64,000 bases of DNA. It comes from Tetramitus jugosus. Its lineage: Eukaryota; Protista; Heterolobosea. Shown in pieces: positions 1,723-4,482 of the stretch. The translations under genes and the position numbers were made by a program. The DNA lies in NCBI GenBank assembly GCA_937625935.1, contig OW569359.1, forward strand, positions 1 through 64,000, read 5' to 3'. How positions within the stretch are numbered: position 1 is the stretch's first letter; each line of letters starts with the position of its first letter. The notes beneath the pieces are model-generated. The model was not told the origin of the DNA. It did no database searches and saw only the letters and a program-made list of their open reading frames with translations.

Positions 1723-2340
1723 TCAAATCGAGTTGAAAACCACCGTAATCTCTTCATCTAAGCTAGCTGAACCTCCCAGAGCAATAAAAAATCTCAAAAA
1801 AAAATTACCATATAAGGAAATCGTTTCCTTAGGTTGGGGAATCCTGGATGTATCCCCAACTCCAACCCCAACCCCCACCTCGTCATTTTCATCACCAGTA
1901 TGGCATATAAAGTCATATATAGTTGAATTGCAACTAAATTTAATCAGGTCAGTTTGATGAATATCACAAACACATCTAGATTTATTGACCGGTCTATTTA
2001 ATGATGTTAGTTGGAATTTGACGAAAAAGAAAAATGTTGCTACATTCCTTGCAATACTACAACCCTCAGTTGGACACTCTTTGGCCCCAATGCATCTTGC
2101 CTGTCTCTTTGTCCAAACTTTTCCCAACCAAACAAATTTGGAATCAGTATACTTGCCTAAGCTAAACTGAATTGCATCATACAATGGCCTTGATTGTAGC
2201 TGAATCTCTTCTGGCAATCTGACTCTCTTGTAGACCTTAAAACTGATATAGATGTTGTGAATGCTTTCGACAATTACATGACTGTTGATGTTGTTGAGTA
2301 GAGGTCTAATGTTGTTGTACTTTCCCCTCGTTCGTTTCAT
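1723..2340 (-). pseudogene. GCM/WRKY-superfamily-like Zn-binding domain ORF, probable transposon-derived remnant
   Basis: W..R..CIGAKEC...C...RP...C..H...L....C pattern after removing a 54-nt intron-like insert (1994-2047, with CTAAC branch and AG end but a GA donor); C-terminus degenerate. Confidence 0.4.
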
Positions 2341-2393
2341 GTCTTTTTGTTTTTCTTTTTTTTGGGTTGACTGAAGCTTTTGGTTGACTGTGC

Positions 2394-2468
2394 TGTAGCG
2401 TCTAAATCATTTAGACGATTGGCAGTCTAAATATATATTTAGACATCTTCCCCGTCTAAATCTCCGCT
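2394..2468 (+). repeat. Left terminal inverted repeat of the transposon
   Basis: tgtagcgtctaaatcatttagacgattggcagtctaaat...gtctaaatctccgct; reverse complement of 4059-4132 with few mismatches. Confidence 0.92.
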
Positions 2469-2521
2469 GCAGAAATTGGTTGAAGCGGAACTCAACCACA
2501 ACAAAAACAAAAAGCATGTGT

Positions 2522-3995
2522 TTATTGTGGATAAACAATCATCAACTCACTCACATCGAAGCACCCAACATCACCAATCGAATATTTGTCAGCATAGACA
2601 TGGTCAGCAGAACAGAATGCAATGACTCTCCATACAACTCTTATTCTCCAAAATCCAACGTTCTAATGTGCCACAAGCAGCATATCTACGTAAGCATCCA
2701 AACTGTATTCCTCAATTCAAAGTAGATGATGTAGTGGTAGTCCGTGTTCCAAGCAACTATCGAAGTAGCACATCTTACCTGTGGGGGAGAAAAGCTAAAA
2801 TTGTAGCAGAATTAACTGATGCTAATGGGCAAAGTCTGTACAAGTACAAACTGGAATGGCAAGCAACTGGTGGTATCAAATCAATTGTATACACCCTCTT
2901 CACTCTATCCTCAACAGATAATTCATTTGGATTCAGACAGTAGCATATTGACCAAGCTTCTAGTGGTTTCATACCAATGGTACTGTGCACAGCATTAAGA
3001 TATGAATTGACTACAGATTCCACATGACATTTCCATCTGGTTGTTTGATGCAATCTCATTTGTTGGAGCAACGATTTCTTCAAAGTTTGATTCAATCTCT
3101 CAACAAGACCTTGAACCCAAGGAGAATATGCTGGTCCTTCCTTCTTCTTGACTCCATACTTCTGGCACACTTGTAATACAGATGCTGCAATAAATTCACC
3201 ATCATTATCAGATCTCAAATTGATTTCATATTTACAGATACCATCTGTACCAACTTCTGGAAGATTCAATTCATTCTTAAATAAGTTCTCTAGAAACTTC
3301 ACTACTGTCTCTGCCTTCTTGTTCTTAATTGAAACTACCCATGCATACTTTGTCAAGTGATCCACGACCACCAAGAGACCAATCTCTTGTCCATCTTTCT
3401 GAAGAAATGAAAGATCAATGTACAAGTGTTGAGCTGCATGATCTGGAACAACGTAACGAAATGGAGGAGCTGGAACTCGATTGATTGTTCTTCCACTTTG
3501 TGCACAATGGAGACACGAATTAACAACTTCACTTACTTTACGTTGTACACCACCTGCCATCAGAATGAAGCTGGAATGCAGTGCTTGTTGTGTTCTTTTC
3601 TGTCCAACATGCGATCCACCGGAACACACATGGGCTTCTTTGATTGCTGCTACTTCTTCATGATCTCTTGGGATCCAGTACCATTCTACTCCATCAGCAA
3701 CTTTACCAGCATACATAGTTTCAGCATTAAACTTTTCTGCTAACGATTCTACTGCTTTCTCTTGTTCAGTTAATGTATGTGACATACGAAACTCATCTGT
3801 CCATTTATTTACAGCATAATACAATCTTCCAGTCTCTGCAACATATTTGAATCTAGATGGTGCGTTGAGTTTACCATTTTCATAGTACTCTCTTGCTTCA
3901 TTGATTGTTTTTACAGTTGGTGGTTTCTTGTTCTTCCGTCCTTTAGTACCACCTTTACGATTATTAATTGGAACTTCTGTTTCAGTCTCTGACAT
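2522..3995 (-). pseudogene. DDE integrase/transposase (H2C2 Zn finger + rve core + SH3-like C-terminal domain), disrupted by an internal inversion (2620-2887) and one frameshift
   Basis: HVCSGGSH...CLHC Zn motif; YIDL / SDND-x35-ERLN triad; the C-terminal FKVDDVVVVRVP...YKYKLEW segment is encoded on the opposite strand; an in-frame tail ends at TAA 2522-2524. Confidence 0.85.
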
Positions 3996-4058
3996 TGTTT
4001 GGATTGTGGTGTAACGATCATGAGTTCTGTAACGACCCTGAAGTTTTGAAACTTTACA

Positions 4059-4132
4059 AGCGGAGATTTAGACAAGGAAGTTTCTAAATCGACATTTAGA
4101 CGGCTATCGTCTAAATACATTTAGACGCTACA
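4059..4132 (-). repeat. Right terminal inverted repeat of the transposon
   Basis: agcggagatttagac...atttagacgctaca. Confidence 0.92.
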
Positions 4133-4482
4133 TGTGCTGCGCAAAAAATTTATGTCCAAGGAATGACATGAAAATTCTATGTTCAAGTTTTTACAGGAAC
4201 CAGTTTGTTCTTTTATGTCAAACACCACGCACCCCCCATGTTAAGACAAACCATCTCCGTCAAAATAGAAGCATCAAAATTTAAACAAATTGATCTCCGT
4301 TTAAACTAGTGCACATACTCACATTCTTCAAACAAACATAAAAAAGGTAAGTGGAGAAATGGAACAAATGAAGCAAAAGGAGATTGACATGAAATGGGCG
4401 ATGTTACCTTCCTCAAATCAATCTTACCATAAAAAATATGACACATGACACGAGTAAAACACATAAAACAAAAAAACGTGAA

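Follow-up and report, generated by a model that had tools for sequence, protein, structure and literature searches.

Introduction

DNA transposons of the Ginger2/Tdd type are single-ORF, cut-and-paste elements whose integrase-like transposase combines an H2C2 finger with a DDE (rve) core, and they have neither a reverse transcriptase nor LTRs. They are recognized by terminal inverted repeats (TIRs) of about 50–300 bp with TGTNR termini (PMC2836005). The target site duplication (TSD) is 4 bp in metazoan Ginger2, which prefers AT-rich RTATAY targets, and 5 bp in TDD-4 and TDD-5, while that of GingerRoot is 6 bp (PMC6839031). The listed Ginger2 families measure 2.8–6.7 kb, and the 2010 description of Ginger2 makes no mention of an SH3- or Tudor-like C-terminal domain.

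Internally deleted copies of Ac/Ds, P, Tc1, and Mutator are generally accepted to stem from abortive gap repair (PMC3814204). The mosquito MITEs Gnome, Elf, and Goblin, derived from Ozma, are likewise internally deleted or rearranged derivatives produced by abortive gap repair, and the reversed internal segment of Goblin has been explained by template switches in the course of the repair (PMC3814204). The microhomologies in the mosquito case are 6–8 nt long (PMC3814204). In all these derivatives the ends are intact, the interior is lost or rearranged, and the breakpoints lie on short microhomology.

Deletion–inversion–deletion structures in human genomes are structural variants attributed to replication template switching of the FoSTeS/MMBIR type, in which an inverted segment lies between deletions and microhomology is present at both junctions. 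FoSTeS/MMBIR is also among the mechanisms named in the study of the mosquito elements (PMC3814204).

Here we describe an element near the left end of a 64,000-nt stretch of DNA (the whole stretch is called the window below), together with an intact sister copy on another contig. By its features, set against the published Ginger description (PMC2836005), the element appears to be Ginger2/Tdd-like. It shares with this group the single-ORF cut-and-paste organization, the H2C2 finger and DDE core, the lack of reverse transcriptase and LTRs, and TIRs tens of bp long with termini of the form TGTNR...CA: in both copies the TIRs are ~75 nt and read TGTAG...CTACA. The TSD is 5 bp in both copies (TGTGC and CAGAG), as in TDD-4 and TDD-5 and in contrast to the 6 bp of GingerRoot. 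The element differs from described Ginger2 families in its length of 2.3 kb, in its conserved SH3/Tudor-like C-terminal domain, and in its targets TGTGC and CAGAG, which are unlike RTATAY.

The window copy is defective, and very probably became so in one complex microhomology-mediated deletion–inversion–deletion, likely with two template switches. As in Ds, the P, Tc1, and Mutator derivatives, and the Ozma MITEs, its ends are intact and its interior is rearranged on short microhomology, and as in Goblin, an internal piece is reversed. Its microhomologies are 3 nt long, however, and it is a single copy rather than an amplified family. Compared with the human variants, the rearrangement is far smaller (0.2 kb inverted, with all pieces coming from within <1 kb of each other) and lies inside a transposon beside a telomere in a protist-like genome.

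Results

Ends, Setting, and Coding Content of the Window Copy

The defective element occupies positions 2394–4132 of the window (1739 bp) and keeps both TIRs, which are 84% identical to each other over ~75 nt (blastn). A (CCCAAA)n telomeric repeat extends from the window start to ~866, and the element lies ~1.5 kb from the chromosome end. The features of the locus are collected in Table 1.

Table 1. Features of the defective element and their counterparts in the intact copy (L002 numbering).
Feature	Window position	Strand	Intact copy	Remarks
Left TSD, TGTGC	2389–2393	.		same 5 nt at 4133–4137
Left TIR, starts TGTAG	2394–2468	+		inverted repeats I2, I5, I8; identical to intact-copy TIR
Piece A	2394–2676		L002:448–736	same orientation
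3′ end of transposase gene, non-inverted	2522–2676	-	L002:448–736 (colinear)	last ~50 codons and stop at 2522–2524
Junction 1, 3-nt microhomology CAA	2674–2676	.		window vs intact A/B boundary vs reverse-complemented intact C/D boundary
Piece C	2677–2882		L002:1253–1458	reverse complement
Inverted segment, 206 nt	2677–2882	+		99% identical to intact copy in reverse orientation
Junction 2, microhomology ATC (2880–2882) in 8-nt near-match ATCNATTG	2880–2887	.		three-way comparison
Piece E	2883–4132		L002:1504–2760	same orientation
5′ part of transposase gene	2883–3995	-		ATG 3995–3993; 99% identical to intact residues 1–374
Right TIR, ends CTACA	4059–4132	-		identical to intact copy
Right TSD, TGTGC	4133–4137	.		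5-bp direct duplication

The 5′ part of the transposase gene encodes the N-terminal region, an H2C2 zinc finger (~3495–3647), and the DDE/rve core (~2997–3440), all on the minus strand. Pfam searches with the window gene gave rve at 2.7e-09 and Integrase_H2C2 at 3e-04; when the transposase was examined for the two domains, rve (4e-10) scored above its cut-off, and Integrase_H2C2 (5.9e-4) and zf-H2C2 lay below theirs but at the expected position.

The initial annotation, made from the window alone, had stated that the minus-strand integrase ceases to resemble an integrase after ...RVKRVYTI, and indeed the 406-aa ORF at 2775–3995 does so right after ...RVKRVYTID. The gene tail that it had assigned to this strand was also found, with ...AFCSADHVY...MIVYPQ at 2522–2632 and the stop where expected. 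The translations of 2522–2676 (-) match the intact C-terminus in two different frames, the reading frame being broken by a 2-nt deletion at 2629/2630. Because of an imperfect direct repeat of 26 nt (2517–2542 and 3996–4021), the peptide ELMIV(Y/T)PQ occurs in the 5′ leader of the gene as well as at its end.

An Intact Sister Copy

The genome to which the window belongs looks eukaryotic and amounts to 26.4 Mb in 56 contigs. Searching it at the DNA level revealed an intact copy of 2313 bp on contig C49, 99.6% identical to the window copy (G000:C49:326389–328701, which is L002:448–2760). Both copies carry the same TIR sequences, and each has a 5-bp TSD of its own; since the TSDs differ (TGTGC in the window, CAGAG on C49), the two are independent insertions of one element.

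The C49 copy lies ~520 bp from a (TTTGGG)n contig end. That the two copies belong to one duplicated subtelomere is ruled out, the DNA between telomere and element showing no nucleotide homology between the two ends. At both chromosome ends this DNA contains cysteine-rich ORFs (window 1723–2340 (-) and L002:2749–3255 (-)) with only weak mutual similarity (tblastx E 1.9e-5), and a Pfam scan of the ORFs adjoining both copies gave no match. The ORF on C49 runs into the TIR of the element, whose insertion may have cut off the ORF end.

The C49 copy contains one unbroken minus-strand frame of 678 aa from the likely start, a Met that aligns with the starts of the paralogues, or of 722 aa from an upstream ATG. 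The frame encodes, in order, an N-terminal region, the H2C2 finger, the DDE core, a long helix, an SH3-like C-terminal domain, an acidic/proline-rich region, and a short tail; a basic KRRR stretch within the acidic/proline-rich part is a candidate nuclear-localization signal. Judging from this frame, the copy is apparently autonomous.

The upstream in-frame ATG sits inside the TIR (L002:2617–2748 (-)). In the window counterpart (3996–4120 (-)), a 7-nt deletion at ~3999 puts this ATG out of frame. The longer form is probably not translated, since the paralogues and the outside homologue P0002 begin near the internal Met. At the other end of the protein, the last ~75 aa (L002:583–810 (-), VFIKDTNG...MIVYPQ) are absent from all paralogues and outside homologues, and a Pfam scan of the last 76 aa gave no match.

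Anatomy of the Rearrangement

The arrangement of the window copy was read from one assembly contig and compared with the intact copy by pairwise BLAST and alignment, and the junctions were examined by a three-way comparison. The interior of the window copy is a microhomology-mediated deletion–inversion–deletion. Between the colinear pieces A and E lies the reversed piece C, and two pieces of the gene are missing, L002:737–1252 (516 nt, piece B) and L002:1459–1503 (45 nt, piece D), together ~561 nt; these sizes move by a few nt with the assignment of the microhomology. As a net change, a stretch of 767 nt of the gene was replaced by 206 nt from inside the same stretch, reversed. Joining A, the reverse complement of C, and E in silico reproduces both window junctions base for base.

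The longer match at junction 2, ATCNATTG, contains one mismatch. Neither junction has inserted bases or long repeats. Microhomology of at least 3 nt at both junctions was infrequent among simulated random breakpoints within the element (P = 0.0037).

In the intact copy, the frame runs ...RVKRVYTIDLIRQRIEKKGHRA directly into QAAYLRK...GGIKSI on the same strand. The peptide QAAYLRK...GGIKS, encoded on the plus strand of the window (2674–2883), thus belongs to the same gene and in the intact copy has the orientation of that gene. The inverted segment codes for intact residues ~386–455, which comprise the last part of the linker helix and strands 1–3 of the SH3-like C-terminal domain. After GGIKSI, the intact protein continues for ~190 residues (the last two barrel strands, the acidic and proline-rich stretch, and the basic KRRR) before it ends with ...AFCSADHVY...MIVYPQ. 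The product of the window copy ends 13 residues before the flipped part and has neither the C-terminal domain nor the basic stretch; as judged from its sequence, this copy cannot encode a working transposase.

These data change the picture given by the initial annotation, in which the segment between CAAT (2620–2623) and ATTG (2884–2887) was taken for a precisely flippable piece of the gene. Its right breakpoint, at ~2880–2887, agrees with the comparison with the intact copy. Its left boundary at 2624 does not: window 2624–2673 is minus-strand coding, and colinearity with the intact copy extends as far as 2676. The peptide encoded there, CGTLERWILENKSCM, is the intact protein sequence found just upstream of ...VRVIAFCSADHVY. 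The boundary had probably been set at 2620–2623 by the break in frame from the 2-nt deletion; the same deletion, unrelated to any junction, accounts for what had been described as a residual 1-nt frameshift just after the first junction. The CAAT and ATTG tetramers are present but are not the breakpoint pair, the real junctions carrying CAA and ATC, and we consider them a chance match because there are 118 comparable 4-nt inverted pairs at a spacing of 200–320 nt within window 2500–3000 alone.

Nor can flipping the segment restore the gene, since 561 nt next to it are lost, and a DNA search found neither piece B nor piece D anywhere else in the genome. The ~490-aa protein reconstructed by such a flip is therefore artificial: the natural product has 678 aa, GGIKSI and AFCSADHVY are separated in it by ~190 residues, and the flip product lacks these, with the last two barrel strands and the basic motif among them.

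Apart from the rearrangement, the two copies differ by ~7 substitutions in ~1750 nt (~0.4% divergence) and by three small indels private to the window copy, namely the 2 nt at 2629/2630 and 4 nt and 7 nt in the untranslated ends. Two of the changes fall on conserved positions of the family and are derived in the window copy: G265, invariant in the family alignment (SDNGGEF), is replaced by Asp (SDNDGEF), and the Lys of the KYRS motif is Asn. The 2-nt deletion and the changes at conserved residues either came after the rearrangement or were already present.

Family Copies and the Ancestral Arrangement

A six-frame protein search detected ~15 further family loci in the genome, with 31–62% identity. 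Wherever a locus extends into the C-terminal region, core and C-terminal domain are colinear on one strand, and the only anti-oriented piece among all family matches is window 2623–2898. In eight paralogues of this genome and in three outside homologues from public assemblies (P0001–P0003), the segment lies in gene orientation; a word-based search for relatives returned, besides these, distant matches to Gypsy Pol. Of the sequence that follows the catalytic core, the block (V)RVP...WGRK...W..TGG is the best conserved, and it lies within the flipped segment. Scoring the orientation of the segment across the assembly, as had been proposed, thus gave no intact copy with the arrangement of the window copy.

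On this comparison of sequences, the arrangement of the C49 copy is ancestral. The opposite polarity, with the window ancestral and C49 derived, is rejected, all paralogues and outside homologues being colinear like C49.

A third close copy (G000:C33:145834–146585, L003:1501–2252) is 90–97% identical, is truncated on the left at intact position 1162, and keeps the last 18 nt of the right TIR. Internally it lacks 116, 176, and 91 nt in three separate deletions. Two of the deletion junctions show overlaps of 2 nt and 1 nt, and the third shows none and has a single inserted base. Copies of this element thus usually end up with small internal losses.

Several paralogues with 31–51% identity are located near contig ends (C49:6450–7808, C49:311–316 kb, C42:3653–4153, and C12:55945–57297), and another is at C45:398904–399248 on a contig that ends at 400224. 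Many paralogues have such positions, a few kb to tens of kb away from a contig end, and the family appears to be concentrated in subtelomeres.

The C-Terminal Domain

The AlphaFold model of intact residues 350–520, built with a 10-row alignment, has a mean pLDDT of 75.7, with 82–91 across most of the barrel, and consists of a 32-residue helix followed by five strands that form the barrel. The inverted piece contributes the helix end and strands 1–3, while strands 4 and 5 are encoded in the deleted 516 nt.

A Foldseek search of the PDB with this model gave no match at E <= 0.001, and the list returned consists entirely of SH3-like barrels (ribosomal L21e, Tudor, chromo, PWWP, and KOW). An exhaustive VIA search gave the same barrel classes at Z 5–6.7, among them the C-terminal domains of the MLV integrase (7jyz, Z 5.1), the PFV integrase (4bac residues 315–375, Z 5.1), and the RSV integrase (4fw1 residues 220–269, Z 5.0, rmsd 1.9 Å), which are tied with many other small barrels. 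Pfam scans found no C-terminal-domain family, with the flipped peptide alone giving one chance match (E 0.13). When alignment A3 was used for a profile search of the PDB, the catalytic core in its two full-length rows dominated the result, which is therefore uninformative for the C-terminal domain.

The predicted domain thus resembles those of retroviral and retrotransposon integrases in following the catalytic core, in being joined to it by a long α-helix, and in forming a five-strand β-barrel, with Z 5.0–5.1 and rmsd 1.9–3.2 Å against the PFV, RSV, and MLV structures. In contrast to this, there is no sequence-level match to them, barrels of the Tudor, chromo, KOW, and PWWP classes reach equal or higher scores, and the fold class alone is common. 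The initial annotation had read an integrase-style C-terminal domain from the plus strand of 2624–2887. Plus-strand coding was confirmed within it, at 2674–2883, and the label is supported by the position and the modeled fold class but not by specific homology to integrases.

In the intact copy the barrel is followed by a GPY tripeptide, which the paralogues do not conserve. In a protein-atlas feature search, the cluster nearest to the intact transposase comprises rve proteins of Preplasmiviricota (Polinton-like viruses), some of which have a Tudor-type domain; this cluster may offer a clue to where the C-terminal barrel came from.

Discussion

Overall, the suggestion of a microhomology-mediated inactivating inversion holds in substance, given the intact sister copy and the colinear paralogues, with the correction that the event was not a simple inversion. 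Parsimony favors a single event. The ancestor of the window copy would have had the C49-type arrangement, and most likely a DNA polymerase switched template twice in succession. Synthesis at the growing end would have reached ...CAA at L002:736, and the end would next have paired with the opposite strand, 722 nt further on, from which 206 nt were copied in the backward direction. It would then have re-annealed via ATC (plus ATTG) ~250 nt ahead on the original template, where synthesis continued. Such switching may have taken place during repair synthesis of the gap left by cut-and-paste excision (abortive gap repair) or at a stalled or broken replication fork, or in break-induced replication, near the telomere (FoSTeS/MMBIR type).

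The same product, identical to that observed, would arise if the gene had been shattered and the 206-nt fragment religated backwards by NHEJ or MMEJ with loss of the 516-nt and 45-nt fragments, without any template switching. The lack of templated insertions at the junctions is in line with this, and the 3 nt observed are compatible with the 1–4 nt of microhomology typical of end joining (PMC3814204). However, three or four near-simultaneous breaks would be needed within <0.8 kb, and at least 3 nt at both junctions together with the 8-nt near-match at junction 2 exceed what blunt joining needs. We therefore regard breakage and rejoining as possible but rather unlikely.

The single event also has to be weighed against several independent steps, with the inversion first and the flanking deletions and the 2-nt deletion added later during decay. 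The window copy did gather other indels of 2, 4, and 7 nt, and the C33 copy carries three separate internal deletions, yet both large deletions abut the inversion breakpoints exactly, with no trace of the original inversion junctions, and with ~0.4% divergence it is hard to fit three events at these two points into the time available. A stepwise origin is accordingly improbable.

Chimeric-read artefacts are usually large fold-backs, not a 206-nt flip between two deletions. It is highly improbable that the element is intact in reality and that the assembler or a chimeric read created the inversion and deletions, even though the contig ends 1.5–2 kb away and repeat-rich DNA beside a telomere, as here, can suffer from poor coverage and polishing. 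Both junctions are clean, with microhomology, and the window copy has its own flanks, its own TSD, ~7 private substitutions, and its three private small indels.

Auto-integration by the element's own integrase is rejected, both TIRs and the TSD being in their normal places.

A programmed, reversible on/off inversion of the transposase gene shared by the whole family, raised earlier as an alternative, is favored by nothing except the bare fact of an inverted coding segment and is refuted by the sequence comparisons: the real junctions share just 3 nt, no inverted-repeat pair near the breakpoints in the intact copy was found to bracket the segment, no recombinase gene other than the broken integrase itself lies beside it, none of the ~15 other family loci is inverted, the losses are irreversible so that flipping back yields no functional gene, and the window copy has in addition a frameshift and changes at conserved residues.

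Taken together, our results identify the window copy as a case of ordinary transposon decay, not a genetic switch, and show that a coding segment may look "flippable" without being a switch. The decay is unusually clear because an intact sister copy survives, which allows both breakpoints of a small deletion–inversion–deletion to be read to the base. The annotation can be corrected accordingly: the element is complete at its ends and internally broken, and C49:326389–328701 is the one apparently autonomous copy of the family. With its TIRs unchanged, the window copy could in principle be moved in trans by the intact copy.

The rearrangement itself poses no new biological question, and the more interesting leads are the subtelomeric clustering of the family and the Tudor/SH3-like C-terminal domain. 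We consider it a speculative and rather doubtful possibility that the window copy is a fresh product of abortive gap repair in a currently active family, with an autonomous copy on C49 and a non-autonomous one in the window, which may home to chromosome ends via the Tudor/SH3-like domain. If this were true, the locus would be a rare natural snapshot of excision, repair, and target choice by an integrase-type DNA transposon.
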